Positions 25,582 to 42,441 of a stretch of DNA of 64,000 nucleotides are shown in pieces. The notes under the pieces are model-generated. The model made no database searches and was not told the origin of the DNA. It was given only the letters and a program-made list of their open reading frames with translations. The first letter of the stretch is position 1. Every line of letters starts with the position of its first letter. The translations under genes were made by a program, and so were the position numbers. The DNA is taken from the IMG/VR virus record IMGVR_UViG_3300017917_003822, positions 1 through 64,000 of that record, one strand, 5' to 3'.

Positions 25582-26256
25582 GTGACAGATTCTGAAACAG
25601 TAAACAATGATAATTTTGATGGAGGTACATCGAGTCAGGTGGGAGACATAAACCTGATTGGAGGTAATTCGGAATTTGCAATATCTCCATCAGGAGCTAC
25701 GGCTGGATTTGATATTAAATATAAGAATATAGCCGAAACCATGCCTGATCTGGAGATAATCGAAGCTACTTTTCAGAGGTTCAATGATCCAAATGAGGTT
25801 GAATTTATAAAGGAATCTTTTGAGGTTGTATACCAGGATAAGACATTAGATAAACTGGATGTTGTTGATTTCTTCCATCCTCTCCAAAGTTTTTCTAACT
25901 ATCAAAAACAAACTTTCGTTATTCTTCCTCAAACATCAGCTAATTTGGACCCTTCGTCATTCACGAGTACCAACGGTGAAGTTTCTATGCTGATAGCTAA
26001 AGCGGAATACCTTCCTGGTACCCCCATTGAGGAAAAGATTATTTTTTGGGATTATAAGGGTAATCAGAGAAATATAATGGGAGAAATAATGATTTTAACC
26101 GGTGCAATAAAGGAGAATCTTTCTTGGAAGGGATGGGACGTTGACCCTTTTTCGACATATGGACACACAGGACCTGCTAATTCGGCCAACGGAGGATTTA
26201 TATTCACGAATCCAACAGATTCGGAGGTACAATTAACAGTAATAACAGCAAATTAA
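25582..26256 (+). CDS. Putative structural protein (paralog of 26258..26755)
   Basis: Shares WxYKGN...MGExMxLxG...GW...GGxxFxNP with the next gene. Confidence 0.65.
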   Translation: MTDSETVNNDNFDGGTSSQVGDINLIGGNSEFAISPSGATAGFDIKYKNIAETMPDLEIIEATFQRFNDPNEVEFIKESFEVVYQDKTLDKLDVVDFFHPLQSFSNYQKQTFVILPQTSANLDPSSFTSTNGEVSMLIAKAEYLPGTPIEEKIIFWDYKGNQRNIMGEIMILTGAIKENLSWKGWDVDPFSTYGHTGPANSANGGFIFTNPTDSEVQLTVITAN

Positions 26257-26257: not shown

Positions 26258-26755
26258 ATGGCAACTCAACCGATAACCTGTCCTTATGATGTACTTGAAG
26301 GATTTAGATTTTATAGAGGTGATTTAGTACTAGATAACGGCTTAACTAACAATCCACCGAAATATCTCTCTCTTAAGGATCTCAATATACCCGTTGATAA
26401 ATTCTCCAGAAGTAGAGTTACTCTTAAACCCGGAGGATATTCTCTTCTGAGTCAAACTGATATTGGTGACGAATATGGGTATGTTTCTTTTATAGCTGTG
26501 AAAGCGATATATCCCACTTCAACAGTGGAGTCAAGAAAATATATAAACTGGACATACAAGGGAAACACTAACTATATGGGGGAACTTATGGTTCTTTCTG
26601 GACAGAGAACATCTTCTACTGATTCAGAATTCGAGGGTTGGAATCTATCAAAACCTGGCACTATTCCCGAGAATGATCCAGGAAACGGTGGTATAGTTTT
26701 TTATAACCCTAGCACTGAAACCACAGTTAAGTTAGAAATATTGGTGTGTGGGTGA
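26258..26755 (+). CDS. Putative structural protein (paralog of 25582..26256)
   Basis: Shares WxYKGN...MGExMxLxG...GW...GGxxFxNP with the previous gene. Confidence 0.65.
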   Translation: MATQPITCPYDVLEGFRFYRGDLVLDNGLTNNPPKYLSLKDLNIPVDKFSRSRVTLKPGGYSLLSQTDIGDEYGYVSFIAVKAIYPTSTVESRKYINWTYKGNTNYMGELMVLSGQRTSSTDSEFEGWNLSKPGTIPENDPGNGGIVFYNPSTETTVKLEILVCG

Positions 26756-26841: not shown

Positions 26842-29220
26842 ATGGACTTTATAAACCAAGTTAAAAATTTAAAAGAACTAACAAAATCACCAGAGGTAAG
26901 AGCTTTGTGTGAAAGCTTCCTTAGAGGTGAATCTGTTTCTAAGGATCAATTGATAGCTTCTATCAACGAACATAACGATTCAGAGACGATACAAATCAAT
27001 GAAACTCCAAGCATTACTAATCACATGGATGCTATAAGGAGAGAGGAGACCGAGGTTTCTAAGAAAACCGCTGCTGCTCTTATGGAGTCTTGGGGAGGAT
27101 TGGGATCAAGAACATCTTCTAACTCAGGATCTTACTTAAATAAATCGGAGGAGATTGAGAAAAAATCAGAAACCCTTTTTGAGAATATCTCAAAGGTAGC
27201 TTCATCAGACCCAGCTACTATCTCTTTTATGGATTCACAGAGTATAAAAAATCTTGGAGTTATTGAAGCGATTTCTAAATTGAAGGAATCATCAATTTAC
27301 ACATACCCAAAAGCTAAAATCGTTTGTGAGCAATATCAGAATCTTATCGTAAATAAGAGATTGCCTGAATTTGCAGTTATAAACAATTTTATAGCTGAAT
27401 TGGAATCTTTCAGCTGGGACAACACTGTTACCCCTATAGCTGATGATCTTAAATCCAAAGCTAAGAAATATTCAAGAGAGATAGAAGTTGCTAAAGTGTT
27501 GGAATCTATTAAGGGTAGTGGTAGTTCTTCTTTCTATTCTGAACTTTCTGAAACTTTAAATTCTTGGTTGGTTTCTGAGAGTAAGTCAAATGGTCTTTTA
27601 GTTAAAAATATTTCTAAATACAGCTTTAACCCAGTAGTCAGAAATCTTATAAACTTTTTAAATGTTCATGAGAGCAATGACACAAGAAAATTAGAAATCC
27701 CAGTAAATGCTCAGGGTGAATCTAGTGTATCTAAAGTATATTCTCCGGTTTTATTTGAGAACGGAAGAACTTTTTTCTATATAGGTGAATCTGTATTTGA
27801 AGCAACCGAGGATGAGCTTGTTAAACTTACCGAAAGCCAGCTATCTTCTCTTCCTGCTGATTATATTAAATTGGTTGAAGTTTCTAAGAAACCTCATGTT
27901 GCTATCAACGAGAATGGTATTTCAATCAAATTTGGTAAGAAAATAGTTAGATTGATCGAAGAGAATGAAAAAGTTGAAGTTTACTTAGGTAAAGATAAAC
28001 TTAAATTTGGTGAAGTTTCAGGACTTGCTAAAATATTAGGATTAGAGTCTGGCTCTTATTTCGGTGTTAATGAATCTGAAGTTGTTAATGACACTCTGGT
28101 TCTTTACACGAACTATTCTAACATAGTAGAATTAGATTTTGCTAAAAACATTTCTTCCAACATATATGAGGGAGTTTGTGTTAATCTATTCAAATGGAAC
28201 AATCAAATTTATGTTCAGAAGATTAACCAAACAATGAATGAAAATTCTATATTCAAGGTAAATGGAACACAGGCGGTATCTATGGTTAAATCTTATTTAA
28301 GATATGATATTTCCGAAGGTTTAACTGAATTTCTTGAGGGTGAGAATAAAATTAAATCTGTCATGATAAATGACAGAAATAAAGTTCTGGAAAATATCAC
28401 TAAGGTTGAGAATGAAATTCTTAAATTGAATTCATTGATGGAATCAACTCCTCTTTATAGAGAATCTAAAGAAATTTTATCTGCTAAATCTATTCTTGAA
28501 AAAGAACTATTAGTACTAAGAGAAAAATGGAATCAGATTAATTCTGAGCTTTCTAAGATTGATGAAGAGATTAAAATCGCATCTTTAATTAATATCTCGG
28601 AGGATGAGAAATTTAATATTGGTGATTTTATTAAAGTTAAGGAATCTGGAGAAACCGGAAAAATCATATCAGTAGACGGAACATCAGGAAGATACACTGT
28701 TCTTTTAGATAGCGGAAAGACCTCGGATTTCTTAGTTAACGAGATTTCTGATCTTGAGGAGGCACTAAGTCAGGCAGCTGAAAAAAATGCTGAAGATGCT
28801 GAAGATGAAGGACAAGAAGAAGTTAAAGAATCTAATAACTTGAACAAGTCTGATTTAAGTATCGAAGAACAAAAAAATCTTTTAAAAACTTTTGCTGAGG
28901 GACACGGATTTTCTAAAGCCCCAAAAGGAGAGGGTGATTCTATAGAAATGGGATTAGATTCTTTACATGGCTATAATATCACAATGAATGAAGGAAAGGA
29001 TAAAAAAGAGGAAGGGGATTTAGCAAAAGCTCCAGGTAACAACAAGAAGGAAAAAGGTAAAGTTGAAGGTGAAGATCTTTTAGCTGACGCTCCTGAAACT
29101 AAGGATAAGACTGAATTTGATGCTGAGGATGCTGATGGAGAAAAATATGAAATTGGTTACAATCTTAGAGAGGGTAACGAAGAAGGATTAGACGAATCTG
29201 AGGTTTTAAAAAAAAAGTAA
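26842..29220 (+). CDS. Large late protein, probably head-associated; KOW/SH3-like module, acidic tail; -1 frame extension to 29381
   Basis: Late promoter at 26809; many I/L-x-E sites; FNIGDFIKVKESGETGKIISVD; ends in an A9 run before TAA. Confidence 0.7.
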   Translation: MDFINQVKNLKELTKSPEVRALCESFLRGESVSKDQLIASINEHNDSETIQINETPSITNHMDAIRREETEVSKKTAAALMESWGGLGSRTSSNSGSYLNKSEEIEKKSETLFENISKVASSDPATISFMDSQSIKNLGVIEAISKLKESSIYTYPKAKIVCEQYQNLIVNKRLPEFAVINNFIAELESFSWDNTVTPIADDLKSKAKKYSREIEVAKVLESIKGSGSSSFYSELSETLNSWLVSESKSNGLLVKNISKYSFNPVVRNLINFLNVHESNDTRKLEIPVNAQGESSVSKVYSPVLFENGRTFFYIGESVFEATEDELVKLTESQLSSLPADYIKLVEVSKKPHVAINENGISIKFGKKIVRLIEENEKVEVYLGKDKLKFGEVSGLAKILGLESGSYFGVNESEVVNDTLVLYTNYSNIVELDFAKNISSNIYEGVCVNLFKWNNQIYVQKINQTMNENSIFKVNGTQAVSMVKSYLRYDISEGLTEFLEGENKIKSVMINDRNKVLENITKVENEILKLNSLMESTPLYRESKEILSAKSILEKELLVLREKWNQINSELSKIDEEIKIASLINISEDEKFNIGDFIKVKESGETGKIISVDGTSGRYTVLLDSGKTSDFLVNEISDLEEALSQAAEKNAEDAEDEGQEEVKESNNLNKSDLSIEEQKNLLKTFAEGHGFSKAPKGEGDSIEMGLDSLHGYNITMNEGKDKKEEGDLAKAPGNNKKEKGKVEGEDLLADAPETKDKTEFDAEDADGEKYEIGYNLREGNEEGLDESEVLKKK

Positions 29221-29381
29221 GTCGTAATTTCTACTTCGCGCCACAAGCAGAAGATCAGAATAAACCGGGTGAACCTTTTGTACAATCGTCCGAGGGTAAG
29301 TTAAGTAAAGCACCTGATGGAAAGAATATAATAGATAAGGATAACGAAGATAACGAAGAATCTGAAGAATCTAAGGAATAA
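29208..29381 (+). other. A9 / A_AAA_AAG slippery site and 54-codon -1 frame extension
   Basis: The -1 frame reads VSRNFYFAP...LSKAPDGK...EESKE* (TAA 29379-29381), ending just before the terminator. Confidence 0.6.
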
Positions 29382-29384
29382 GAC

Positions 29385-29418
29385 AAAAGAATGTAGCTAT
29401 ACGCTACATTCTTTTTTT
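29385..29418 (+). terminator. Intrinsic terminator
   Basis: AAAAGAATGTAGC-TATAC-GCTACATTCTTTTTTT. Confidence 0.85.
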
Positions 29419-29420
29419 AT

Positions 29421-29448
29421 GAAATCTTTCCCTATTTTTTGACTAAAA
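29421..29448 (+). promoter_or_regulatory. ECF-like promoter GAAAT-N17-CTAAAA upstream of the late sigma gene
   Basis: Same 17-nt spacing as the other copies. Confidence 0.6.
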
Positions 29449-29486
29449 TATAGACCCGAATTAAACAAATTAAACTCAAACTATTA

Positions 29487-29846
29487 ATGACAAAAATTTA
29501 TGTAAAGAATAGCGAGCTCATGGCAGCAGTTATAGAATCAAAGAATGCTGGAAAATTAACACCTGAGACCATAGAGATGTTCAATCTTATGATAGAGGGA
29601 ATATCTAAAAAAATGTCATATAAGGATCCTGAGGATAAAGAGGATTGCATGGCTTTTGCTATGGAGGACTTATGTAAATATTGGAATAGATTCAATCCTG
29701 AAAAATCAAACAATCCGTTTGCGTATTTCACTCAGATTGCAAAGAATGGTTTTGCTAAAGGTTGGAAAAAACTACATCCGCCAAAAAATCCTAAAACTAT
29801 ACCCTTTAGTTATATTACAGGGGAGGATAACTCATATAACGTATAA
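29487..29846 (+). CDS. gp55: Late-transcription sigma factor (T4 gp55-like)
   Basis: YVKNSEL, FNPEKSNNPFAYFTQIAKNGF. Confidence 0.88.
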   Translation: MTKIYVKNSELMAAVIESKNAGKLTPETIEMFNLMIEGISKKMSYKDPEDKEDCMAFAMEDLCKYWNRFNPEKSNNPFAYFTQIAKNGFAKGWKKLHPPKNPKTIPFSYITGEDNSYNV

Positions 29847-29855
29847 TTATTGATT

Positions 29856-30341
29856 ATGACTGATATAAAAAAAGTAAAACCGAACGGTGAATACAGATCT
29901 GGAAAATATGAACCAAAAAATCCGGAGAAATATATCGGTGATATCCATAATATAATTTTCAGATCTTCCTGGGAATATAGATTTTGCACATATTGTGACA
30001 CTAATGATTCCATACTAAAATGGAGTTCAGAACCTTTGTCCATAGATTATTATAATCCATTGGATAAAAAAACACACAAGTATAATGTTGATTTTTATAT
30101 GAAGGTGCTGAAAGAAAGCGGGGAAACCCAGGAATGGATTATCGAGATAAAACCAGAAAACCAAACTAAGAAGCCTATTTATGAGGGAACTATGACCGTA
30201 GCCAAACTTAAATCATATAATAGAAACATGCAGATTTGGATTACAAATCAGGCCAAATTCAAAGCTGCCAAAGAATGGGCGGAAAAAAGAGGTTATAGAT
30301 TCGGTGTGATCGATGAGAATTTTTTATTTAAAAGCAAGTAA
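29856..30341 (+). CDS. gp4: Head completion nuclease (T4 gp4-like, TnsA fold)
   Basis: PKNPEKYIGD, FRSSWE, WSSE, IEIKP, NQAKFKAA. Confidence 0.9.
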   Translation: MTDIKKVKPNGEYRSGKYEPKNPEKYIGDIHNIIFRSSWEYRFCTYCDTNDSILKWSSEPLSIDYYNPLDKKTHKYNVDFYMKVLKESGETQEWIIEIKPENQTKKPIYEGTMTVAKLKSYNRNMQIWITNQAKFKAAKEWAEKRGYRFGVIDENFLFKSK

Positions 30342-30943
30342 TGTATAACGATCTAGTTCTCCAGTATAAAGAATCCTTAAATAAATCGGATGACATTTTT
30401 TCAGCAACTGATGATTTTTTTTTAAAAAAATATTTTAAAAATGAATCAGTGGAGAGAAAATTTACTCCTCCTTTTGTACCAGGAGAGATTTACACTTTCC
30501 TATACCAAACGGATTCCGAGGTAAATGAGAAAAGACCCTTTATAGATAGAATGCCTTTGATTATATGTACAGATACGTTTAATACAAAGGAATCAGGTAC
30601 GATAATTAAGGGAATAGATCTAATAACAGTGCCACCGAGAATCAGGATTGATATCATCGGAAAAATCTATGACAATTTTAGCGAGCAGATAAAGTCCAAT
30701 GACTCATCATATACTAAAGGAGGAGCTAAATCGCCAATAAATTTGAAGGATCAGGTATTAAAAGTTTTGCTAAATAATACTGGTTATGTGAATTCTCTCT
30801 TCGGATTTAAGTACAAGTTTATAAGATCTCCCAAAGTTATATCCTCCGATGACTGGGCAAAGATACCATATTTGAGAGTAAATTTTATAGAGGGCTTACC
30901 TATACAATCGATATATAATGAATATCAATCGAAATTAATTTAG
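30341..30943 (+). CDS. DNA end protector protein (T4 gp2-like)
   Basis: PGEIYTFLY, DRMPLI, GIDLITVPP; adjacent to gp4. Confidence 0.7.
   Translation: MYNDLVLQYKESLNKSDDIFSATDDFFLKKYFKNESVERKFTPPFVPGEIYTFLYQTDSEVNEKRPFIDRMPLIICTDTFNTKESGTIIKGIDLITVPPRIRIDIIGKIYDNFSEQIKSNDSSYTKGGAKSPINLKDQVLKVLLNNTGYVNSLFGFKYKFIRSPKVISSDDWAKIPYLRVNFIEGLPIQSIYNEYQSKLI
30910..30917 (+). promoter_or_regulatory. Late promoter motif GATATATA (portal genes)
   Basis: Exact copy in the 3' end of the gp2-like gene, about 60 nt before portal 1. Confidence 0.65.
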
Positions 30944-30976
30944 TTTTTTCGATAAAATGAATAAAGTATTTAATAA

Positions 30977-32572
30977 ATGGCAGGTTTCGTAGATAATAAT
31001 AATCCATCACAAACCCCTGTTATACAGAGGATAAGGGAATCTGTGAGAAAGATCAGCACCTTTGGAATGAAGTATGATGACATGGTAATCAGAAATTCCC
31101 AAGCTGTTGGTGTAACAGAGGCGGCTTTCCTTAATAAAAATAAATCCAATGTCGAGGACGAGAGTATGTTATGGACGCTTGCTAAGCAAGATGTATCTTC
31201 CCGCCAGTTCATTGGTTATTTTGATAAGGATTATAAGGGAAAGAGAGATTTTCTAAGAAAGTTTTCGCTGAATCCTGAGATTGAATGGGTACTTGATACA
31301 ATTTGTGACGAGGCGGTTTCATATGATCCCTCCAATTTTTTTGCATATCCTGATTTTATAGATCTTACTGACATTAATGAAAAATTAAAAGAGGATCTAT
31401 ATGAAACATATAAAAAGATTTATGATATCTGGGGGTTTTCTGATGATATTACCGGTTGGCAGTATTTTAGACAATTTATTGTCGATGGATTCCTAGCATT
31501 TGAAATCATTTATGATGACAAGGGACAGAATATAATAGGTTTCAAGGAGCTTGATGCTGTTACTTTGGTACCGAGTGTTGAAAAACAAATAGACGGATCT
31601 TTTGTAAATACATGGACACAATATCCTCAGGACCCTAAAAGAAAGAGAGTTCTTTATGATCCTCAGATTATCTATATTTCTTACGCTAAGGGTAACTCAA
31701 TATCAAGAATAAGCTACATCGAGAGATTAATTAGACCTTATAATATACTTCGGATTATGGAGTATACTCGTGTTATTTGGTCTGTTATGAATGCATCATT
31801 TAAGCTTAAAATGACCGTTCCTATCGGGTCAAAATCTCCTCAAAAAGGTATGCAGACTCTAGGTGAGTTGATGAGTATCTATAAGGAGGATATTGAACTT
31901 AATGATGAAAGTGGCGAATTAACAATTGACGGTAGACCAAAAATACAATTCTATAAGAATTACTTGATGCCATCCGGAGTTAATGGAACTCCAACTATAG
32001 AACCTCTAAATACCGAGGGTCCTAATCTTAATGATCCGCAACCGCTGGCATATTTCTTTGATAAATTTATTCTTGAATCTAAGGTACCTCCATCGAGATT
32101 TCATAATCCTGACGGTGGTAGTACATCACCATATTCCAACGGAGCCGAAGGATTGGATAAGGAGGAAATAAGATTTGCTAAATTTATATCTAGACTTAGA
32201 TCGGTTTTCCAGGAAATATTAGTTAAACCTCTGTGGATACAGATGGTTAAAAAATATCCAAAACTGGAGGATGATTTTCTTTTTAAGAGTCAATTGGGAT
32301 TAGATTATTTTTCAGATAATCCATTTAAACTAAATCAGGAGATGGATATGATGAATAAGAAAAAAGAAGCTATAGTATCCATGAGTGGTTTGATTGGAGA
32401 TGATGAAAAACCATTCTTCTCTAATGCATTTCTTATTGAGACGTATCTTGGATTATCTAAGCAGGATATAGACGCAAATAAGGAGGCGATCGAGAGAAAA
32501 GAGAAAGCTAAAAAGAAAAAGGAGAAAGAAGGCGGTGAGGAAGAAGAAGGAACACCGGAAGTAACACTATAA
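30977..32572 (+). CDS. gp20: Portal protein, copy 1 (T4 gp20-like)
   Basis: PEIEWVLDTICDEAV, FIVDG, SYIERLIRPYNILRIME, VPPSRF, EEIRFAKFISRLR. Confidence 0.92.
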   Translation: MAGFVDNNNPSQTPVIQRIRESVRKISTFGMKYDDMVIRNSQAVGVTEAAFLNKNKSNVEDESMLWTLAKQDVSSRQFIGYFDKDYKGKRDFLRKFSLNPEIEWVLDTICDEAVSYDPSNFFAYPDFIDLTDINEKLKEDLYETYKKIYDIWGFSDDITGWQYFRQFIVDGFLAFEIIYDDKGQNIIGFKELDAVTLVPSVEKQIDGSFVNTWTQYPQDPKRKRVLYDPQIIYISYAKGNSISRISYIERLIRPYNILRIMEYTRVIWSVMNASFKLKMTVPIGSKSPQKGMQTLGELMSIYKEDIELNDESGELTIDGRPKIQFYKNYLMPSGVNGTPTIEPLNTEGPNLNDPQPLAYFFDKFILESKVPPSRFHNPDGGSTSPYSNGAEGLDKEEIRFAKFISRLRSVFQEILVKPLWIQMVKKYPKLEDDFLFKSQLGLDYFSDNPFKLNQEMDMMNKKKEAIVSMSGLIGDDEKPFFSNAFLIETYLGLSKQDIDANKEAIERKEKAKKKKEKEGGEEEEGTPEVTL

Positions 32573-32576
32573 TAAA

Positions 32577-34202
32577 ATGGCAGGATTTTTAGATTATTTA
32601 AAACCCAATCAATCTGCTCTAGGTAACATATTAAAAAACCTGGGGAACATATCAAAATTTGGTATGCAATATGATGATATGGTTGTGAGAAATTCACAGG
32701 CCATCGGTAAAACTGAGGGTTATTTCTTTAACCAGGAAGGAACAGGATTCACACAAAACGATGCCTTTTATTGGACAGCTTCCTATCAGGATACTAAGGT
32801 AAGAAAATATATTGCATATTTTGACAAGGACTATATAGAAAAAAGAAACTATCTCAGAAAGTTTTCTTTGAACGGAGAAATTGAATTCATATTAGATACT
32901 GTTGCTGATGAATCGATATGTTATGATGACAGGAATTATTTTGCACAACCCTCCTTTATAAATATAGATTTAAAGGATAAAATTAAGGAGGAGATGTCAA
33001 ATCATTATAATAGGCTGTATAATGTTTTTGGATTTCAGAACAGTGTTTTAGGTTGGCAGTATTTTAAACAGTTTTTAATTGACGGATTCTTAGCATTTGA
33101 AATTATTTATGATAACAAGGGAAAGGAAATCATAGGATTTAAAGAGTTGGACCCATCGTCTCTACAGCCCGTTGTTGAGAAAGTTGGCGAGACTGAATAT
33201 AAACAGTTTTGGATACAATATCCAAAAAATCCTCAGATGACTAGGAAACTTACTAACGAGCAGATCATTTATATTTCTTATGCGAAAGGAAATAGTATAT
33301 CGAGAGTAAGCTACATCGAAAGACTTGTTAGATCATATAACATTTTAAGAATCATGGAGAATTCCAGAGTTATCTGGAATGTTATGAATGCTTCATATAG
33401 ACTTAAGTTTATTATACCCATCGGTAGTCAGTCTCCACAGAAGGCTATGCAGACACTTGGCCAATTGATGTCTAATTATAAGGAGGACATTTCGATTAAT
33501 GATGCATCCGGTGAGTTAACAATAAATGGAAGACCAAAAGTTCAGTTTTATAAGAACTACCTATTCCCAGAGAAGGACGGTGTATCACCTCAGATAGAAT
33601 CTTTAAATCCAAGCGGACCTGATTTTAATGTAATGGAGAATGTTCTTTATTTCTTCAATAAGCTTAAAATGGATTCAAAAATTCCTTATGCTAGATTTGC
33701 ATCAAAGAATGGTACACCAGCCAACTATCAGATTTCCATAGATCAATTGGAGCGGGATGAAATTAGATTCGAGAAGTTCCTTAGAAGATTAAGATCCATA
33801 TTTCAGGAAATATTAGTCAAACCCCTTTATATTCAGATGTGCCTAAATCATCCCGAGTTATCTAAGGATAAGAGTTTCAAAGCTAACATAGGACTTAATT
33901 TCTACAGGGATAGTGAATTTGAGGAAATGGTTGAGATGACTGGATACACCAAAAGAAGTGAATTTATTAAAGGTCTGGGTGAGTTAAAAGTTAAATTTGG
34001 AGAAGAAGAAAAACCATACTTTGATAACGACTTTCTTATTCAGAGATTCCTTGGTATGAATCCTGATCAAATTAAAATGAATAAACTCTACAAAGAAAGA
34101 GAGGATAAAGCTGCTGAAAAAGCTAAAGGTGCTGAAGGTGCTGAAGGAGAAACAGAGGGAGCAGCTGAGGGAGAAGAAACAACACCGGAAGTAACGCTAT
34201 AA
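32577..34202 (+). CDS. gp20: Portal protein, copy 2 (T4 gp20-like)
   Basis: Same motifs as copy 1 (SYIERLVRSYNILRIME, IPYARF, RDEIRFEKFLRRLR); full length. Confidence 0.92.
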   Translation: MAGFLDYLKPNQSALGNILKNLGNISKFGMQYDDMVVRNSQAIGKTEGYFFNQEGTGFTQNDAFYWTASYQDTKVRKYIAYFDKDYIEKRNYLRKFSLNGEIEFILDTVADESICYDDRNYFAQPSFINIDLKDKIKEEMSNHYNRLYNVFGFQNSVLGWQYFKQFLIDGFLAFEIIYDNKGKEIIGFKELDPSSLQPVVEKVGETEYKQFWIQYPKNPQMTRKLTNEQIIYISYAKGNSISRVSYIERLVRSYNILRIMENSRVIWNVMNASYRLKFIIPIGSQSPQKAMQTLGQLMSNYKEDISINDASGELTINGRPKVQFYKNYLFPEKDGVSPQIESLNPSGPDFNVMENVLYFFNKLKMDSKIPYARFASKNGTPANYQISIDQLERDEIRFEKFLRRLRSIFQEILVKPLYIQMCLNHPELSKDKSFKANIGLNFYRDSEFEEMVEMTGYTKRSEFIKGLGELKVKFGEEEKPYFDNDFLIQRFLGMNPDQIKMNKLYKEREDKAAEKAKGAEGAEGETEGAAEGEETTPEVTL

Positions 34203-34224
34203 TTCTTTTTTTAAAATTCCATTA

Positions 34225-35199
34225 ATGAAATTTGATTTTTCAAGATTATTTTCTAAAAGTAAAATACTCGTAATTGGCGATGTTATGCTGGATCATTATG
34301 TTCTTGGTTCAGTTTCGAGAATTTCGCCAGAAGCACCAGTTCCTGTTCTAGTTAGGGAATCTGAGAGTCATTATTTGGGTGGTGCAGGTAACGTTTTTTC
34401 TAATATACATTCTCTAGGTGGGAATGGTGATATAATTTCCGTGATTGGAGACGATTTTAATGGTGAATATATCGAGAAAATGATTTTTGATAAATCCACA
34501 TTAAGTGTTCTTATTAAGGATAAAACAAGAAAAACCACCATAAAATCCAGATACATCGGAAATTCTCATCAATTACTTAGGGTTGATGACGAGGATTGTC
34601 TGGACATTAATCAGGAAATCCAATTACATTTTATGGAGAGACTTAATGCAATCATAGACTTCTACGATTGTGTTATTATGGAAGATTATAATAAGGGACT
34701 TTTAACCCCCGAAATAATAAAAAATGTTGTTAATCTATGTAGATCGAAGGGAAAGAAACTTATAGTTGATCCTAAAATAAGAAACGTTGATTTCTATAAG
34801 GGTTGCTCCGTTCTTAAACCTAATTTTTCGGAATTTTGTATTCTTGCAAATAAGAAGATGAACGTTTCAGATTTTGATTTAATAATAGAGGAGGCCAGAA
34901 AGATTATAAAAAAAATGGATCTCGAGTCTATCTTGGTAACTTTGTCTGATTCTGGAATCCTCTATGTTAGCAAATACGAATCGTACCACAGTCCGGGTTA
35001 TCCAATAAAAGTATCCGATGTTTCCGGAGCTGGCGACACAGTCACCGCTATGTTCTCCCTGTGCTGGTCGTCCGGTGTCGATTTAAAAGAGACTTTGGAT
35101 CTTTGCAATGTAGCAGGATCTATAGCTTGTTCGTTTGTTGGTGCTGTTTCCGTAAACATAGAAGATGTAATTAACAGCGAACATCTAAAAAATCTGTAG
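34225..35199 (+). CDS. rfaE1: D-glycero-D-manno-heptose-7-phosphate kinase (HldE/RfaE domain I, PfkB family)
   Basis: VIGDVMLDHY, RISPEAPVPV, GGAGNV, LLRVD, DYNKG, VDPK, DVSGAGDT. Confidence 0.92.
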   Translation: MKFDFSRLFSKSKILVIGDVMLDHYVLGSVSRISPEAPVPVLVRESESHYLGGAGNVFSNIHSLGGNGDIISVIGDDFNGEYIEKMIFDKSTLSVLIKDKTRKTTIKSRYIGNSHQLLRVDDEDCLDINQEIQLHFMERLNAIIDFYDCVIMEDYNKGLLTPEIIKNVVNLCRSKGKKLIVDPKIRNVDFYKGCSVLKPNFSEFCILANKKMNVSDFDLIIEEARKIIKKMDLESILVTLSDSGILYVSKYESYHSPGYPIKVSDVSGAGDTVTAMFSLCWSSGVDLKETLDLCNVAGSIACSFVGAVSVNIEDVINSEHLKNL

Positions 35200-35229
35200 T
35201 TAATATTTTTTCTGTCCGGGTTTCTTTAT

Positions 35230-35237
35230 TATATTTG
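35230..35237 (+). promoter_or_regulatory. Bacteroidota-type -7 promoter element (TATATTTG)
   Basis: TAnnTTTG about 20 nt upstream of the ligase ATG. Confidence 0.65.
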
Positions 35238-35256
35238 TGGAAATTAAAAAACAAAT

Positions 35257-36588
35257 ATGATACAGGAACTAAGATTATTTAAAACCCTCGAGAATCTAAC
35301 TGGTGAAGGTTCTCAAAAATCTAAACAAAATTTAATTGCTGAAAATCTAAATGAAAGATTTTCATATATGTTGGATGTTTGTTACAATCCTTTCATCACC
35401 ACTAAACTCCATAAGATTGCATTTAATGAATCATTGTCAGATAGCAATCCTAATCATTGGGAAGATTTCAAAACACTCATAGAGGAGCTTAAAACAGCTC
35501 CTGCAGCAAACGATTCTCTCCGAAATAGAGCTCAGAATCTTATATCTCAGAAAATTTCGGATGATCCAGCGGAGGATCTTGAGCTTAGAACTGTTCTTAT
35601 GAAGATTTTCACCAAGAGAATGAATATCGGAATCGGTGCCAAATTAATCAATAAAGCTGTTAAAAGGGAGCTAATTCCCGATCCGTCACTTATGTTGGCA
35701 ACTGATGATCACGAGACCATAGAGAAATGGGAAAAAATATACTGCGAGGAAAAGTATGATGGGGTGAGAGTTATTGCTCTTTATAAAAACGGAGAGTTTT
35801 CTTATTTTACCAGGGCTTTCAACGAGCTTGATTCCACATGCTTTCCTAAGATAACTTTTGATCTTAAAACCTGTATGATAAACAGCGGTTTAAAGGGTGA
35901 TTGGTTTTTTGATGGCGAATTGACAGATTTGAATAGAAAATCAGTAAGCGGTAAAGTTACCCAGATATTAAAAGGAAAGGTTGATTCTTCGATAGAGTCA
36001 GGTTTACTTTTTAATGTGTTTGATTTGGAGGAAGCTTCAACACTGGAGAAAGGTTCAGGTATCATTGATTACAAAACGAGGAGAGATACTCTGGAAGTAG
36101 TGCTTAAAAACATAGATGAAAATTCACCGATTAAATTAGCACAAATGTGGGAGCTTGATGATGTTAGTGAGGTTGCTACTATTTATAAAAGATTGGTTGA
36201 CGTTGGCGGCGAAGGCGTTATTTGTAAAGACAATGGAATTTATGAATGCAAGAGATCAAAATCTTGGGTTAAATTTAAGGAGGTGAATGATTGCGATCTT
36301 GAGATAGTTGGTTGGTATCCTGGTGAAGGTAAAAGGGAAGGTTTTATTGGAGGTTTTATTTTAACTGACAGCTCAAAAACACTAAATGTAAGAGTTGGGG
36401 CTGGGTTTACTGATAATGATCTAAAAACTCTAAGTCAGGATCCGGACTCACATATCGGAAAAATAGCAGCTATTCAGTATAACGTAACGATTACCGACAA
36501 GCACGGTAACAGATCTTTGTTTCTTCCTAGATTCATAGAGGTCAGATCTGATAAAAGCTCACCTGATGATTTTTCGGGCAAATTTTAG
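35257..36588 (+). CDS. lig: ATP-dependent DNA ligase
   Basis: EEKYDGVR (KxDG), FDGE, EGVICK, WVKFK, FLPRF. Confidence 0.95.
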   Translation: MIQELRLFKTLENLTGEGSQKSKQNLIAENLNERFSYMLDVCYNPFITTKLHKIAFNESLSDSNPNHWEDFKTLIEELKTAPAANDSLRNRAQNLISQKISDDPAEDLELRTVLMKIFTKRMNIGIGAKLINKAVKRELIPDPSLMLATDDHETIEKWEKIYCEEKYDGVRVIALYKNGEFSYFTRAFNELDSTCFPKITFDLKTCMINSGLKGDWFFDGELTDLNRKSVSGKVTQILKGKVDSSIESGLLFNVFDLEEASTLEKGSGIIDYKTRRDTLEVVLKNIDENSPIKLAQMWELDDVSEVATIYKRLVDVGGEGVICKDNGIYECKRSKSWVKFKEVNDCDLEIVGWYPGEGKREGFIGGFILTDSSKTLNVRVGAGFTDNDLKTLSQDPDSHIGKIAAIQYNVTITDKHGNRSLFLPRFIEVRSDKSSPDDFSGKF

Positions 36589-36616
36589 GAAACAAGCTTC
36601 TGAATATCAACTAGAA
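36589..36616 (+). promoter_or_regulatory. ECF-like promoter GAAAC-N17-CTAGAA
   Basis: Upstream of the clamp loader operon. Confidence 0.65.
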
Positions 36617-36621
36617 CAATT

Positions 36622-37566
36622 ATGATACAAGAATTATTAACAGAGAAACTTAGACCGAAGGAACTTAGACATATGATCCTTCCGGAGAGAATATCAAGAA
36701 TATTCGAGAATGGACTTAATCAAAATGTTTTGTTAAGTGGACCTCCTGGTTGTGGTAAAACAACTTTAGCTAAAATTTTAGCTGCTCCATATCCCCATAT
36801 TTTTATAAATGGTTCGGACGAGAGCTCAGTAGAAACCCTACGTGTGAAAATTAACGATTTCTGCTCCACGATTTCTGTTATGGATGGTAAATCCTCCAAG
36901 AAAGTGGTTATATTGGATGAGTTTGATGGTGTTTCTGATCAGTTTCATAAAGCTTTACGTGGAACCATAGAGAAATTCGCAGGAAATACTCGATTTGTTG
37001 CTACCTGTAACTATATAAATAAAATTCCTGACGCGATACAAAGTAGATTTGAGGTCATAGATTTTAATCCAGTAAATAGCGAAGAGGAGGAATCTTTAAA
37101 AAAGGAATGGAATAAAAGGGTCAGTCTTATTCTATCTAGACTTAATATAGAAATAGACGAGGATTCTTTATTTGAATTCCAAAAGAATTATTACCCAGAT
37201 TTTAGATCAGCTCTGAATAAAATTCAAAGTTGGAATATTGAGAAAGTTAAGGTTGTTGATTCCAAGAAAATGAGTGAACTTGGATGGTCATATGAATCTC
37301 TATATGAGCTTATAATCTCATCTAAAGACCCTGTTGTTAACTACCAGATAATAGTTGGTGAATACCAAGGTAAGGTTGATGATGTTATGTCAGCACTGGG
37401 TGAGGAGTTCATTAAATGGATCATTGACAATAAACCAGAGTTTAAGAAGATAATTCCTGCTGTGATTGTCCTAGTCGCTGATCATCAGGCACAGAGAAAC
37501 CAGGTTATCGATCCAATGGTCTCACTACTTTCTCTAGTCTTTCAGATACAGAAATTAGTAGAATAA
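36622..37566 (+). CDS. gp44: Clamp loader AAA+ subunit (gp44/RFC-like)
   Basis: EKLRP, GPPGCGKTT, ILDEFD, TCNY, IQSRF. Confidence 0.93.
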   Translation: MIQELLTEKLRPKELRHMILPERISRIFENGLNQNVLLSGPPGCGKTTLAKILAAPYPHIFINGSDESSVETLRVKINDFCSTISVMDGKSSKKVVILDEFDGVSDQFHKALRGTIEKFAGNTRFVATCNYINKIPDAIQSRFEVIDFNPVNSEEEESLKKEWNKRVSLILSRLNIEIDEDSLFEFQKNYYPDFRSALNKIQSWNIEKVKVVDSKKMSELGWSYESLYELIISSKDPVVNYQIIVGEYQGKVDDVMSALGEEFIKWIIDNKPEFKKIIPAVIVLVADHQAQRNQVIDPMVSLLSLVFQIQKLVE

Positions 37567-38097
37567 ATGAGAAGGGTAATATTAGTTGGTAAGGGGGGAT
37601 CAGGTAAGGATTACGCTAGGAAAATACTAGAGGACAAGGGATTTAGATATTGCATTTCTCATACAACTAGACCACCTAGAGAAGGGGAGGTTAACGGGAG
37701 AGATTATAATTTTATATCTAGGGATTCTGCAGCTCATCACTATATTCCTAATAATCTTTTCTATGAGTACGTGATATTCAATAATTGGTTATACGGAACA
37801 ACCAAGGAAGAATTTGAAAAATCCAACCTTTTCATAATGACTCCCTCCGGTGTATCTAAGCTTTTGCCCGAAGATAGAAGGGAATCTTTTATAGTTTATT
37901 TTGACATTGATATAGAAACTAGACGCGGGAGATTAAGTGAGAGAAGGGATGCAGATAACGTCGAGAGAAGGCTGGAGGCCGATGATTTAGATTTTGAAAA
38001 CTTTACAGATTTCGATCATAGAATAGTAGATCCCGAATTTATAATTGAGGGAGACTGGACCGACGTTGAAAGATATAAAATTAAACAATTACAATAG
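37567..38097 (+). CDS. gmk: Guanylate kinase-like protein
   Basis: GKGGSGKD, SHTTRPPREGEVNGRDYNF, YGT. Confidence 0.85.
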   Translation: MRRVILVGKGGSGKDYARKILEDKGFRYCISHTTRPPREGEVNGRDYNFISRDSAAHHYIPNNLFYEYVIFNNWLYGTTKEEFEKSNLFIMTPSGVSKLLPEDRRESFIVYFDIDIETRRGRLSERRDADNVERRLEADDLDFENFTDFDHRIVDPEFIIEGDWTDVERYKIKQLQ

Positions 38098-38102
38098 AAA
38101 GT

Positions 38103-39251
38103 ATGGTTAATATACTGATAGATGGGAATTACATATTCCATAAAACATTTGGGATATTTGGTGGATATGGGAACGTGGATCCCGGTAAAATATTAAAAGA
38201 TAAATCTGAACAAGCTGCTTTTATAAGAAAAGTATCTACCGATTTGTGCTCGTCATTAAAGATGATACCACAGGGAGGAAGATTGGTTTTCACTGCAGAT
38301 AGTAGAAGTTGGAGGAAGGATGTAGAAATAGAGGATGGCGGATATAAATCAGGAAGAGTTAAAGATGAAACTGTTGACTGGTCGATATTTTTTGAACTTA
38401 TGCATTCATTCGGTACACATTTAGAAAAAATGGGATTTATTTTTTCTAAGGTTGATGGTGCCGAGGGTGACGATCTTTTAATGTTTTGGTCCGATTATTT
38501 CAATTCACAGAACGAGAATTGTATTATTATAACCGGAGACGGAGATTTGCATCAGTTAGCAAAAATATCTGATGATTCATGGACAGCCATATGGAACAAT
38601 AACTCAAAGAAAAATACGATCTATGTTCCCAATGGGTGGAAACAACTTTGGCTTGATCGAAGTGAATCTGTTAGCATATTTAATATGTCATCAGCAATCT
38701 CTCCGGAAAAAGAAAGATTCAAAGATTTTTTAAAGAAGGTTAAATTGGAAGAGGTTGAGAGTAGACCTTTCATATTTAAAAAGATCCTTGTTGGTGACGA
38801 TGGAGATTCTGTTCCCTGCGTCTGGAGCTATTCGCAAAATAACAAGGTTGTTAATTTTACACCAAAAAAAGCTGAGACAGCATATGCTGCATTTCTTGAA
38901 TCTGAGTGGTGTGACAAAACTTTTGAATATCTACTTACTTCACCGGAGAGTGATGATTTTTTAAAATGGTTGAGTGGAGTGATTATCAGAACATCCAAAG
39001 GAATTGATAGTTCCGAAAACAGAGAAAAGGTTAAATCCAATATACTTCGTAATTTTAAACTTATGTGGTTAAATTCCCTTATGATACCAGATTTTGTTTC
39101 TCTGGGTTGTAAAAGTGAAATAAACCGAGGATTGGCTTTGGAAAAAAGATCTGTAACATTAGACAGAATAAAAATACTAGAGGGTACAGAATGGGTTACG
39201 CAGGGATATCAGCCTAAGGGATTTGATCCATTTGAACATCTTTTAAAGTAA
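38103..39251 (+). CDS. rnh: 5'-3' exonuclease / T4 RNase H-like
   Basis: LIDGN, SWRK, EGDD, GDGDL, GDDGDSVP. Confidence 0.85.
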   Translation: MVNILIDGNYIFHKTFGIFGGYGNVDPGKILKDKSEQAAFIRKVSTDLCSSLKMIPQGGRLVFTADSRSWRKDVEIEDGGYKSGRVKDETVDWSIFFELMHSFGTHLEKMGFIFSKVDGAEGDDLLMFWSDYFNSQNENCIIITGDGDLHQLAKISDDSWTAIWNNNSKKNTIYVPNGWKQLWLDRSESVSIFNMSSAISPEKERFKDFLKKVKLEEVESRPFIFKKILVGDDGDSVPCVWSYSQNNKVVNFTPKKAETAYAAFLESEWCDKTFEYLLTSPESDDFLKWLSGVIIRTSKGIDSSENREKVKSNILRNFKLMWLNSLMIPDFVSLGCKSEINRGLALEKRSVTLDRIKILEGTEWVTQGYQPKGFDPFEHLLK

Positions 39252-39262
39252 AAATTCTTATC

Positions 39263-39682
39263 ATGCAACTTTTCGATATAGTTAAAAATATATTTTCCAC
39301 CAATAATAAGACATGGAAATCTGTTGGTAGAAATGACAAATCCAGGAATTTCTTTATGATTAACCGGATTATGTCAATCCAATTCCCCATACAAGCCAAC
39401 CAATTTAATAAACTTAGAGTTTCTCCACCTCCTGTGGTTGATTGGTGGAGAGATACTCTGTCCCATAGATTTAGTAAACCTCCTGTATGGATCTATACGA
39501 AAACAAAAAAAGTAGAGAAAGAGGATGTTTCCAAAGTCAAGGAATCTCCTGAGGTCGAATCCTTTATTAGGGAAAAATATAAAGTAACCAAAAGAGATTT
39601 AGCTCAATTAAAACAGTTCTATCCGGAAAAATATCAGGAATGGATTTCAGATATTGCCGATCAAACTGGACTTCAAAAATAG
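39263..39682 (+). CDS. Probable clamp loader small subunit (gp62-like)
   Basis: LFD...FFMINRIMS...ANQFN pattern; same operon as the gp44-like gene. Confidence 0.5.
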   Translation: MQLFDIVKNIFSTNNKTWKSVGRNDKSRNFFMINRIMSIQFPIQANQFNKLRVSPPPVVDWWRDTLSHRFSKPPVWIYTKTKKVEKEDVSKVKESPEVESFIREKYKVTKRDLAQLKQFYPEKYQEWISDIADQTGLQK

Positions 39683-39697
39683 ACGATATATAGAGGG

Positions 39698-40249
39698 ATG
39701 GGAAAGGTAAATAATAAATTGGTTGATAAAGTAATCTCAAGTTTAGATTGGGATGCTATCTACGAGGTTAACAACTGTTTTAAACATGGTGTTGGTGACG
39801 GAACCTCAGCTATTCCTGGGATTAAAAGAAAGCCTTTTGCTGACGGAATAACTAAATCGGATCTTAAAAACGAACTTAAGGGTCTTCTTAAATACGTTAT
39901 AGAAAATGATCTCTCTGAATTGATCTATGGCTATTGGATGATATTTTGGAATAATGCCGAGTGGACCGAAGAATCAATTAGCCAACTGAGGGACCAATAC
40001 GAGGATGAGGATACCGATGAATTTGAGCAGATTGTTCTGGATTCAACTCTTGAAGTAATATACTCACCTCAGAGGGTTTTTGCTATCGAAAATTCCCAAT
40101 TAAAAAATATCAGGACTGAGGATTCCGATATTAATAAACTAGAATCTATGCTTAAGAAAGCATTAGATGGAGAGCAGTATGAATTAGCATCTAAAATAAG
40201 GGATGTTATCAAACTGCACAAAAATAACCCGGAGGAGTCGGATAAATAG
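39698..40249 (+). CDS. Protein with C-terminal UvrB/UvrC (UVR) coiled-coil motif
   Basis: LESMLKKALDGEQYELASKIRDVI. Confidence 0.7.
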   Translation: MGKVNNKLVDKVISSLDWDAIYEVNNCFKHGVGDGTSAIPGIKRKPFADGITKSDLKNELKGLLKYVIENDLSELIYGYWMIFWNNAEWTEESISQLRDQYEDEDTDEFEQIVLDSTLEVIYSPQRVFAIENSQLKNIRTEDSDINKLESMLKKALDGEQYELASKIRDVIKLHKNNPEESDK

Positions 40250-40253
40250 TCTA

Positions 40254-40733
40254 ATGAAACACATAATCCCAATAAACGAATTTGATAGTAATGCATTTGG
40301 AGACACCTACGGATATGGTGGAGCTAATGGCGTACTTAAAATAAACTATAAGCCCTTCAGCGATCTTTCAGTTTCTGTTGGACCTGACCCTAATGTTGAT
40401 AGGACTGTAAAGGGATCTGAATTTCAGTTAGGTGATGTTATAATTGCTGAACCGTTGCATTCTAAGAAAAAAGTCATTGGTGTTATAGTTAGATCATTTA
40501 GAAACCCGGACAATCAGCAATATAGATATTTCATTCAAGTTTATAATAAAGGTAAAAAAACGGAGAGAGTTATCGAGGTCAAATCTAATACTGCCAAATT
40601 TGCGGAAGGTGGAGATCACGGAAACATGGAGACTATTTCTAAATATAAAAACAATGAGATACCAAGTTCTGCTTTCAATTCAAAAACAGTTTATAGTTCG
40701 AATGAACTTGGTTTAGAAACTACGGGAGGATAA
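40254..40733 (+). CDS. Hypothetical late protein with capsid-targeting-like leader
   Basis: GATAAATA at 40241, then MKHIIPINEF; start at 40254 preferred over 40203. Confidence 0.65.
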   Translation: MKHIIPINEFDSNAFGDTYGYGGANGVLKINYKPFSDLSVSVGPDPNVDRTVKGSEFQLGDVIIAEPLHSKKKVIGVIVRSFRNPDNQQYRYFIQVYNKGKKTERVIEVKSNTAKFAEGGDHGNMETISKYKNNEIPSSAFNSKTVYSSNELGLETTGG

Positions 40734-40757
40734 TTTTTATCCGGAACTAATTCCGCT

Positions 40758-41690: not shown

Positions 41691-41739
41691 TTTTTATTTT
41701 CCGACTTTCTCGATTATATTTACAGAAAAATAAATAAGC

Positions 41740-42441
41740 ATGTTTACTAAGGATACCATACAAAATTTTCTATATTTCGATGTTGAAACTGCATCTCTTT
41801 ACCCATCACTCGATGAAATGTATAAAGAAAACTATAGATTATTTCACCTTTGGAAAAAGAGAGAGGAGTATTATAAAGGGGCTTATCCAAAGTTAGCTGA
41901 TTTGGATCCTGATGAAATATACAATCAAAAAGCAGGATTGGAACCAGAGTTTTCTAGAGTTGTTTGCGTTACATTTGGCTCTTATAGCGACGACGGCGAA
42001 AAGAGATTCATGTCATTCTCAGGTGAAGATGAGGTTGACATTCTAACTAAAAGTAACAAGGTTCTAAATAATGCTATGGTCAAAAATTGGAAATTGTGTG
42101 GCCATAATATAAAGGGATTTGATGTTCCATGTCTAGGTAAGAGAATGATATACAATGGAATAAATCCATCACCCAATCTAAGAACATGGGATAAAAAGCC
42201 GTGGGAGATGCCCTACGTTGACACTTCAGAGATTTTTTCCTTTGGTAGCTGGATTCATCAAAAATATTTAAGTTTGGATCTTTTGTCTTGTTCTCTGGGA
42301 ATACAATCACCAAAGGATGATCTTGATGGATCCAAAGTTAATTCCACTTATTGGATAGAAAAAGATTATGAAAAAATAGCAACATATTGCGAATCTGACG
42401 TTAAAACCGTAATGGATGTCATGGAAAAAATATGTTTTTGA
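41740..42441 (+). CDS. DEDD 3'-5' exonuclease (PolB-exo-like)
   Basis: FDVET, GHNIKGFD, YCESDV. Confidence 0.88.
   Translation: MFTKDTIQNFLYFDVETASLYPSLDEMYKENYRLFHLWKKREEYYKGAYPKLADLDPDEIYNQKAGLEPEFSRVVCVTFGSYSDDGEKRFMSFSGEDEVDILTKSNKVLNNAMVKNWKLCGHNIKGFDVPCLGKRMIYNGINPSPNLRTWDKKPWEMPYVDTSEIFSFGSWIHQKYLSLDLLSCSLGIQSPKDDLDGSKVNSTYWIEKDYEKIATYCESDVKTVMDVMEKICF

Follow-up and report, generated by a model that had tools for sequence, protein, structure and literature searches.

Tailed phages normally build the portal, the ring through which DNA enters the head, from one gene. Why, then, does a 64,000-nt stretch of DNA from virus record IMGVR_UViG_3300017917_003822 (the whole stretch analysed here, hereafter the window) carry two portal genes side by side, and could these phages build the ring from two proteins? 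An earlier note, made from the sequence alone, had pointed to two intact, diverged gp20-like genes 4 nt apart with near-identical 3' ends, and had proposed a heteromeric portal (for example alternating 6+6) or two specialised vertices, with the shared C-terminal tag TPEVTL as a possible docking signal for scaffold or protease. As detailed below, what the note saw in the sequence is correct, whereas our follow-up gives its interpretation only partial support.

Two intact portal genes in tandem

The two ORFs lie on the + strand at 30977..32572 (A, 531 aa) and 32577..34202 (B, 541 aa), and the TAA stop of A is followed by the spacer TAAA (32573..32576, + strand) and then by the ATG of B. Profile searches showed that both match PF07230 (Portal_T4) over nearly the whole profile, A with 196.6 bits over positions 9-432 of 433 and B with 222.8 bits over positions 3-427 of 433, against a cut-off of 22.9 bits, and both also match phrog_213 (portal). 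The two proteins are 52% identical over 518 aligned residues. To compare their predicted folds, we computed AF2 models of the single chains, which gave pLDDT 79.5 and pTM 0.76 for A and pLDDT 79.1 and pTM 0.75 for B, with the same secondary-structure elements in the same order. The top Foldseek hits for both models are all T4 gp20 chains (for A, entries 9mkb, 9lu7, 6uzc and 3ja7), at E values of 1e-15 to 1e-22 and TM up to 0.70, in agreement with a portal fold comprising wing, stem, clip, tunnel loop and crown.

The gene context is likewise that of a T4-like head and packaging module. Upstream, in the T4-like core order, are a neck-like protein (829 aa), a 260-aa ORF, the large terminase and the tail sheath (8776..17314, + strand; matches to PF11649 and phrog_679, PF03237 and PF17482), followed directly after the sheath gene by the tail-tube locus described below. 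A small sigma-70-region-2 protein and a TnsA-like endonuclease (29487..30341, + strand; PF04542 and PF08722) and a gp2-like DNA end protector (30341..30943, + strand; phrog_429) precede the portal genes. The same upstream gene order is seen in single-portal relatives, and PF26869 (Phage_T4_gp2) sits at the same position in the related contigs L088, L089, L090 and L291. An S77-like prohead protease (649 aa) and a gp23-type major capsid protein (572 aa; together 46011..49709, + strand; PF03420 and PF07068) lie about 12 kb downstream, whereas in LR756500, LR756501 and PTm1 these genes follow the portal closely (directly in the first two). A scan of 29000..36000 for sigma-70 promoters and intrinsic terminators gave counts no higher than in shuffled sequence and nothing between A and B, a result that says nothing either way about co-transcription.

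Both proteins start with MAGF and end with an acidic low-complexity tail plus TPEVTL. The MAGF start is not special to the pair, because single-copy relatives also start with MAGF, MSGF or MASY. The 3' tracts encoding the tag and stop, 32551..32572 in A and 34181..34202 in B (both + strand), match at 21 of 22 positions, and this part of the AF2 model of A is disordered. Other genomes show tracts of 24-33 nt with at most one mismatch (L004, L021 and L047) or a longer near-identical stretch (L045), while still others have the same residues with 3-4 synonymous differences. Among 33 unique relatives with a tag on both copies, the last five residues are identical in 22, against 7.9 expected from shuffling and a maximum of 15 in 5000 shuffles. 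The match is therefore not due to chance, and the tag is under selection or homogenised across the clade.

Retention, ancestry and constraint of the two copies

To exclude that the tandem is an assembly chimera of two strains or that one copy is only sporadic, as the earlier note had asked, we examined related viral contigs and inferred trees of the portal proteins. A megablast search of the 3.2-kb region against 50,697 phage records found nothing, and only protein-level searches reach relatives. About 160 related contigs, from many different samples, could be judged. The pair is present in the same order in 78 of 80 loci of the clade containing the window (clade I), the other two being cut at the contig end just before B, and in 80 of 80 loci of the sister clade (clade II). 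Orthologues of A are 67-94% identical in 78 clade-I loci and those of B 68-94% identical in 80 loci. The gap between the copies is 1-23 nt in clade I and 2-11 nt in clade II, and no gene is ever inserted between them. One relative, the 5-kb contig L133, has an in-frame TAG in its first copy, though this may be a sequencing error.

In the most careful tree, first copies (A, A2 and P0123) form one clade with support of 100/99 and second copies (B and B2) another with 99/96, the four groups together form a clade at 100/99, and the two subtrees mirror each other; quick trees also separated the A and B copies. Of the five nearest outgroup lineages, the four that could be judged (P0122, P0125, P0126 and P0131) are single-copy by gene context and lie outside. 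The gene following the P0125 portal, which starts 8 nt downstream and looked like a possible second portal, has no similarity to portals. This points to one ancient duplication that was never lost.

We then asked if the two copies evolve under different constraints. Both are under strong purifying selection, with dN/dS of 0.021 for A and 0.015 for B, and they evolve at equal rates (median dN 0.171 against 0.172, r = 0.96). Fixed A-versus-B differences cluster in the stem, clip and tunnel loop (23 of 145 columns, against 11 of 380 elsewhere; Fisher P = 5.5e-7, and P = 0.002 among columns conserved in both copies). Compared with single-copy outgroups, A keeps the ancestral state at 13 and B at 15 of 35 fixed differences, 7 being unclear, such that each copy is derived at about half of these sites.

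Retention of the C-terminal tag is also reciprocal. In clade I, B keeps the strict tag in 52 of 56 unique genomes and A in 35, while in clade II the first copy keeps it in 44 of 46 and the second in none, and no genome lacks a hydrophobic C-terminus on both copies. The tag is on both copies only in the window's subclade; in other subclades of clade I only B keeps it, and in clade II only the first copy does. The idea of an identical shared docking tag is thus only partly right, as the tag is a family-wide feature, a flexible acidic tail ending in a hydrophobic-x-hydrophobic carboxy terminus, and single-copy relatives also end in a hydrophobic or aromatic residue. We also looked for TPEVTL, or any hydrophobic-T-hydrophobic carboxy terminus, on other ORFs of the window. 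Apart from the two portals, the only match is a 57-residue stop-to-stop segment at 923..1096 (ending QATL) that lies out of frame inside the long ORF 574..1704 and is probably non-coding, and no partner can be suggested from a shared tag.

A possible mixed portal ring, or two rings

We regard as shown by these analyses that the T4-type portal gene is duplicated in tandem in two large sister clades of uncultivated jumbo phages (probably hosted by Bacteroidota, with Chitinophagales or Saprospirales suggested by binning), the data pointing to a single event in their common ancestor, that both copies have been kept adjacent and in the same order in every descendant that could be judged, and that both are under equally strong purifying selection, with models predicting a complete portal subunit for each. 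These results make a two-protein portal system a serious proposition, but beyond this we are inferring. On balance, and with no more than even confidence, we favour a model in which the two proteins are co-expressed and co-assemble into one mixed dodecamer, most simply an alternating A6B6 ring with six-fold symmetry. In this view each paralogue changed, after duplication, a different subset of otherwise conserved positions in the ring-forming, channel-lining core (stem, clip, channel loop and tunnel loop), and both copies are now needed as a result. The disordered acidic tail with its hydrophobic-x-hydrophobic tip would be an ancestral docking peptide that projects from the crown into the capsid interior and is needed on at least one of the two subunit types, with short gene-conversion tracts keeping the two versions identical in the window's lineage, where both copies retain it. 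Candidate partners of the tail are the scaffold and protease protein at 46011..47960, the capsid protein or a neighbouring portal subunit. A feature that can sit on either paralogue fits best if both are in the same assembly. Moreover, a freshly duplicated homomer forms mixed oligomers by default when both copies are co-expressed. T4 gp20 subunits already occupy non-equivalent positions in situ, and the T4 portal-neck complex is solved in C6 (PMC12929587, PMC7136217). On the other hand, there is no direct evidence of co-assembly, the fixed differences are mostly conservative and no charge-swapped pairs are visible, so nothing shows that A-A or B-B contacts have become disfavoured. A BLASTP self-comparison of the 829-aa neck-like protein, conducted to ask whether it is an internally duplicated adaptor that would present six-fold symmetry to the portal, found no internal repeat and gave this idea no support.

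Equal rates and strict linkage would also fit two separate essential homo-oligomeric rings with different jobs, one the portal proper at the tail vertex and the other a second portal-like ring, for example stacked coaxially inside the head as part of a core or acting only during prohead initiation. Both copies are full-length and strongly constrained, the enrichment of fixed differences in clip and stem, where terminase and neck bind in T4, could equally reflect two rings that bind different partners, and giant heads often contain extra internal structures. This possibility cannot be excluded, but we consider it less likely, as loss of the tag from either paralogue in different clades is hard to reconcile with rings of fixed, distinct roles, co-expressed paralogues at 52% identity with mostly conservative interface changes would be expected to mix, and neither copy looks like the unchanged portal at the fixed sites. 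Even less likely is that A and B are interchangeable portals, either of which alone can build the ring, kept to serve host range, growth conditions or evasion of host defences. Portal proteins do trigger some antiviral STAND (Avs-type) defences and the two copies differ at surface positions, but no loss of either copy was seen in about 160 loci spanning deep divergence, the spacing of 1-23 nt implies obligatory co-expression rather than a switch, the equal and very low rates contrast with arms-race genes, which usually evolve fast, and a second portal would not hide the first from a sensor. By contrast, the reading of the pair as a strain chimera or as one portal with a decaying duplicate, for which only the prior rarity of two portal genes and the stop codon in L133 speak, is refuted by the recurrence of the same order across samples, the 52% identity, the mirrored clades and the dN/dS of about 0.02 for both copies.

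The portal is the most conserved machine of tailed phages and herpesviruses, in every solved case it is a ring of twelve copies of one protein, and how such a ring copes with five-fold, six-fold and twelve-fold partners is a long-standing question in virus assembly. The retention of two diverged portal subunits for a long evolutionary time offers a natural experiment: if the ring is mixed, evolution has hard-wired non-equivalent subunit positions that T4 achieves by conformational change alone. As the portal is widely used as a single-copy marker gene for phage diversity (gp20 surveys), it would be counted twice in this clade, and automated annotation would benefit from recognising that the pair is genuine.

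A second paralogue pair and comparison with other phages

All-against-all BLASTP revealed a second tandem pair in the window at 17360..18505 (+ strand), two tail-tube genes (184 and 191 aa, 57% identical) that match tail-tube phrogs. This pair is present in all 80 clade-I tube loci and in clade II, whereas LR756500 and the Lak phages have one copy. We entertain, more tentatively than the mixed ring itself, that these phages build their whole DNA conduit from paralogue pairs, with an ordered A6B6 portal of true six-fold rather than twelve-fold symmetry and a tail tube made of two tube proteins, both pairs having arisen before the two clades split and having been fixed ever since. If so, this would be the first hetero-oligomeric portal in any tailed phage or herpesvirus, and part of the 12-to-6 symmetry step would move from the neck into the portal itself. 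Full-text literature searches for two, paralogous, duplicated or heteromeric portals found no report, and papers on related aquatic and marine large phages do not mention a portal duplication.

A and B share family and fold (N-terminal arm, wing, stem, clip, tunnel loop and crown, as predicted) with T4 gp20 (PDB 3JA7, 6UZC, 9MKB and 9LU6/9LU7) as well as the order neck, terminase, sheath, tube, gp2, portal, protease and capsid protein, but sequence identity to T4 is only about 17-22%. T4 and every phage in the 50,697-record collection that could be judged have one full-length portal gene, whereas here there are two full-length paralogues, each with a long acidic tail and a hydrophobic tip. The nearest relatives are single-portal huge phages of the same family, namely LR756500 (462 kb), the Lak megaphages and contig L090 carrying P0122, at 44-50% identity to both A and B. 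They share the upstream synteny of sigma-like gene, TnsA-like gene and gp2, and L090 also has the same downstream clamp loader and 5'-3' exonuclease; their portals also end in a low-complexity tail with an aromatic or hydrophobic last residue.

T4 gp23 and gp24, the major capsid protein and its vertex paralogue, provide a precedent for a duplicated structural protein whose two copies occupy non-equivalent positions of one symmetric shell (PMC12929587), although this concerns the capsid lattice and gp24 forms separate pentamers rather than mixing with gp23 within one ring. The tube pair is paralleled in the megaphage G, where two adjacent tail-tube genes lie next to the sheath gene and both proteins were detected by proteomics. 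Phage G has one lambda-like portal, and its two tube proteins differ in length (242 and 189 residues) and are described as having diverged homology to tube proteins. Finally, only LR756501 and LR756503 in the collection showed a second portal match, and it is a truncated paralogue. In the related 735-kb phage LR756501 this gene is 32% identical to that phage's own portal over the N-terminal arm and wing, is only 342 aa long, lacks the clip and crown, lies 70 kb from the real portal between a thymidine kinase and an M16 peptidase, and arose independently.

Two adjacent portal genes and their genomic setting

Inspection of the window revealed two adjacent ORFs on the + strand, at 30977..32572 (A, 531 aa) and 32577..34202 (B, 541 aa), in which the TAA stop codon of A is followed by TAAA and then by the ATG of B, placing the two genes 4 nt apart. 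Both proteins match Pfam PF07230 (T4 gp20 portal) across almost the whole profile, with scores of 196.6 and 222.8 bits for A and B, respectively, versus a cut-off of 22.9, and both also match PHROG 213 (portal). A and B are 52% identical over 518 residues, both begin with MAGF and end in a low-complexity acidic tail plus TPEVTL, and the last 22 nt of the two genes agree at 21 positions. The earlier note, which had described two intact portal genes in tandem with matching termini, is thus accurate in every detail of what it observed.

The window is the first 64 kb of a 270,629-bp IMG/VR contig for which no similar phage was found at the DNA level in a collection of 50,697 records. At the protein level, the nearest relatives are the huge phages of Al-Shayeb et al. 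(LR756500 at 44-46% identity, then LR756502/4, LR745206 and LR756501), followed by the Lak megaphages of Prevotella and by jumbo phages of Tenacibaculum, Chryseobacterium and Sphingomonas. Related contigs (L292, L293 and P0013 in our numbering) have been binned into MAGs named Saprospirales, Chitinophagia and 'uncultured bacterium', which provides a weak hint of a Bacteroidota host and also shows that phage contigs are being deposited as bacterial genome sequence.

The window keeps the T4-like core gene order, with a neck-like protein (8776..11265), the large terminase (12053..13876), the sheath (13961..17314) and two tail-tube genes (17360..18505), followed by a sigma-like gene, a TnsA-like gene and a gp2-like gene (29487..30943) and then the two portals. 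The small sigma-70-region-2 protein and the TnsA-like endonuclease (29487..30341) are conserved in this arrangement upstream of gp2 and the portal in the contigs of the portal representatives P0123 (contig L088) and P0122 (contig L090, single portal), whereas a further contig (L089) and the P0131 contig show the TnsA-like gene without a sigma-domain hit. Downstream of the portals, about 12 kb of metabolic and replication genes (34225..46000; PfkB sugar kinase, ATP-dependent DNA ligase, clamp-loader subunit, guanylate kinase, 5'-3' exonuclease, UvdE-like endonuclease and others) separate them from the S77 prohead protease (46011..47960) and the gp23-type capsid protein (47991..49709). By contrast, the protease and capsid genes follow the portal closely in LR756500, LR756501 and PTm1, and directly so in the first two, while L090 also has the clamp loader directly after its portal. 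The prohead protease is 649 aa long and its S77 protease domain covers only about the first 170 residues; the long remainder may be a fused scaffold, since the PTm1 homologue is annotated as scaffolding protein and protease. It is a candidate partner for the portal tails.

An ancient tandem duplication retained under equal constraint

To exclude that the pair is an assembly chimera or is only sporadically present among relatives, both of which the earlier note had named as grounds for refutation, we scanned IMG/VR with B and examined the best 80 loci among the 148 related stretches that were found (clade I). In 78 of these an A orthologue (67-94% identical to A) is located 1-23 nt upstream of a B orthologue (68-94% identical to B), with A-versus-B identity remaining at 48-56% throughout, and the other two loci start at the contig end just before B. 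A representative-level search of 1.84 billion proteins then gave the wider family, in which one representative, P0123, grouped with A, and its 5-kb contig carries a second portal ORF 9 nt downstream. Scanning with P0123 found 184 more viral stretches, and all 80 loci examined among these (clade II) again carry a tandem pair, with gaps of 2-11 nt. The pair is neither an artefact nor sporadic.

Next, we built a maximum-likelihood tree of 95 sequences (support given as ultrafast bootstrap / SH-aLRT). All first copies (A, the clade-II first copies and P0123) form one clade at 100/99, all second copies (B and the clade-II second copies) form another at 99/96, and the two together form a clade at 100/99, with the branching order inside the A half mirroring that inside the B half. 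The nearest outside lineages that could be judged are single-portal by gene context: P0122 has a clamp loader directly after its portal, P0126 and P0131 are also single, and the gene downstream of the P0125 portal is not a portal, whereas the P0121 contig ends at the portal and is therefore left out of this comparison. There was therefore one ancient tandem duplication, and no clean loss was seen in about 160 genomes sampled. One 5-kb clade-II contig (L133) has a single in-frame TAG at codon 328 of its first copy (1542..3035), which is otherwise 98% identical to a relative; this is most simply a sequencing error or a rare (nonsense) variant, although it could also be a hint of TAG recoding as in the related Lak phages.

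We then asked if the two copies are under comparable constraint. Pairwise Nei-Gojobori estimates on the 18 genome pairs with unsaturated dS gave a median dN/dS of 0.021 for A and 0.015 for B, with a maximum below 0.05, and over all 1540 pairs the median dN is 0.171 for A and 0.172 for B (r = 0.96, slope 0.92). AlphaFold2 models of A and B (pLDDT 79.5 and 79.1, pTM 0.76 and 0.75, respectively) have the same predicted helices and strands in the same order, with the first about 10 residues and the C-terminal tail disordered, and for both models the 13 best PDB matches are all T4 gp20 chains. Both copies are thus working genes of equal standing.

Divergence between the copies and the C-terminal tag

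To determine where the copies differ, we aligned 56 unique clade-I pairs and identified 34 columns in which the residue is at least 90% conserved within A and within B but differs between them. We placed the T4 domain boundaries (PMC4493910) on the alignment using the HMMER alignments to gp20 and found that, on this mapping, 23 of the 34 columns fall in the 145 columns of stem helix 5, clip, stem helix 7 and tunnel loop and only 11 in the other 380 columns (odds ratio 6.3, P = 5.5e-7; P = 0.002 when only columns conserved in both copies are counted). In T4 this core forms the inter-subunit beta-sheet, lines the DNA channel and binds the terminase and the neck. Compared with 20 single-copy relatives, A keeps the ancestral residue at 13 and B at 15 out of 35 sites. 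For example, A replaced a glycine that is invariant in those relatives (A residue 336, near the inner clip loop), while B replaced a near-invariant Leu and a conserved Asp (351 and 353 in A numbering, the channel loop). The divergence is therefore reciprocal and neither copy is the unchanged original.

The TPEVTL tag is the tip of a disordered, Glu/Gly/Ala/Lys/Pro-rich tail and fits the pattern hydrophobic-x-hydrophobic-COOH (VTL, ITL, FTL, FKL, VTI). As single-copy relatives also end in a low-complexity tail with an aromatic or hydrophobic last residue (..NNFGF, ..GGDMF, ..TSGY, ..EFEF, ..APTF), the feature is ancestral to the family. Among the 56 unique clade-I genomes, both copies are tagged in 33, only B in 19, A is tagged and B merely hydrophobic in 2, and both are merely hydrophobic in 2. 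Among the 46 unique clade-II genomes, by contrast, the first copy is tagged in 44 and the second in none; the second copy ends in a Pro/Ala/Glu/Thr-rich tail with no hydrophobic tip in 29 and in a hydrophobic residue in 15. No genome lacks a hydrophobic end on both copies.

Where both copies are tagged, the tags co-vary between genomes (PEVTL, PAVTL, PQVTL, PAVTI, EAVTL), and the last five residues are identical in 22 of 33 genomes, versus 7.9 expected by shuffling. Two processes are visible at the DNA level. Some genomes (the window and the relatives L004, L021 and L047) share 22-33 nt with at most one mismatch at the two 3' ends, and relative L045 shares a longer near-identical stretch, indicating short gene-conversion tracts. 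Others (L007, L016, L024) encode the same residues with three or four synonymous differences, indicating purifying selection on the peptide itself. Within the window, the only other stop-to-stop segment ending this way is a 57-residue stretch at 923..1096 that lies out of frame inside a longer ORF. The identical shared tag to which the earlier note drew attention holds only for the window's subclade, where it results from gene conversion on top of an ancestral tail motif.

A putative mixed portal ring and duplicated tail-tube genes

While the duplication, its age, its universal retention and the equal constraint on both copies are established by these data, the mechanism, including the joint expression and co-assembly of the two proteins, is inferred. 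We favour a mixed ring. The copies have never been separated by an inserted gene, even though in the same lineage the portal itself has been separated from the protease and capsid genes by about 12 kb, which suggests selection for joint, balanced expression. Duplicated homomers mix by default when co-expressed, and the interface differences here are mostly conservative, while the reciprocal divergence is centred on the ring-forming and channel-lining core. Moreover, the tag can be dispensed with on either paralogue but apparently not on both, as expected if the two proteins sit in one assembly where six tips suffice. Non-equivalent positions for chemically identical portal subunits already exist in T4, whose in situ portal chains differ and whose portal-neck complex (12 gp20, 12 gp13, 6 gp14) is solved with C6 symmetry, and an alternating A6B6 ring would make such non-equivalence genetic. 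On the other hand, none of this is proof, and two separate rings with different partners would explain most of the same data, although this possibility fits the interchangeable tag less well. The interpretation in the earlier note is therefore partly supported: the heteromeric portal that it proposed is the best-supported mechanism, but on present evidence it is a hypothesis that we consider about as likely as not.

Both proteins are clear members of the T4-type portal family, and what is unusual is the fixed paralogue pair, which is real, robust and widespread and, as far as we could search, unreported: full-text searches for two, duplicated, paralogous or heteromeric portals found nothing relevant, and papers on related large aquatic phages do not mention it. 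The only other extra portal match in the phage collection is in the 735-kb genomes LR756501 and LR756503. In LR756501 it is an independently derived, truncated paralogue of 342 aa (14021..15049 of the stretch L297, about 142.0-143.0 kb of the record) that keeps the N-terminal arm and wing but lacks the clip and crown, is 32% identical to that phage's own portal, and is located 70 kb from the real portal between a thymidine kinase and an M16 peptidase.

An all-against-all comparison of the window's ORFs revealed a second tandem pair, two tail-tube genes (17360..17914 and 17930..18505; 184 and 191 aa, 57% identical) lying directly after the sheath gene. All 80 clade-I tube loci have both copies, as do clade-II contigs, in which the portals lie about 16.5 kb downstream on the same contigs. 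In a quick tree the first tube copies of both clades group together (SH-aLRT 91), so that this duplication also predates the split of the two clades, while the second copies are unresolved. LR756500 and the Lak phages have one tube match and one portal match, whereas phage G offers a precedent for two tube subunits, both detected by proteomics. Thus, the two ring-forming parts of the DNA conduit were both duplicated in this lineage, although the contigs of the nearest single-portal relatives are too short to show whether the two events fell on the same branch. A third adjacent pair of weakly similar ORFs lies at 25582..26256 and 26258..26755 (29% identity over 160 residues, E 3e-11), neither of which has a family match in PHROGs. 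The phage also carries auxiliary genes, namely an asparagine synthase (55307..56713), a group-1 glycosyltransferase (6576..7541) and the PfkB-family carbohydrate kinase (34225..35199).
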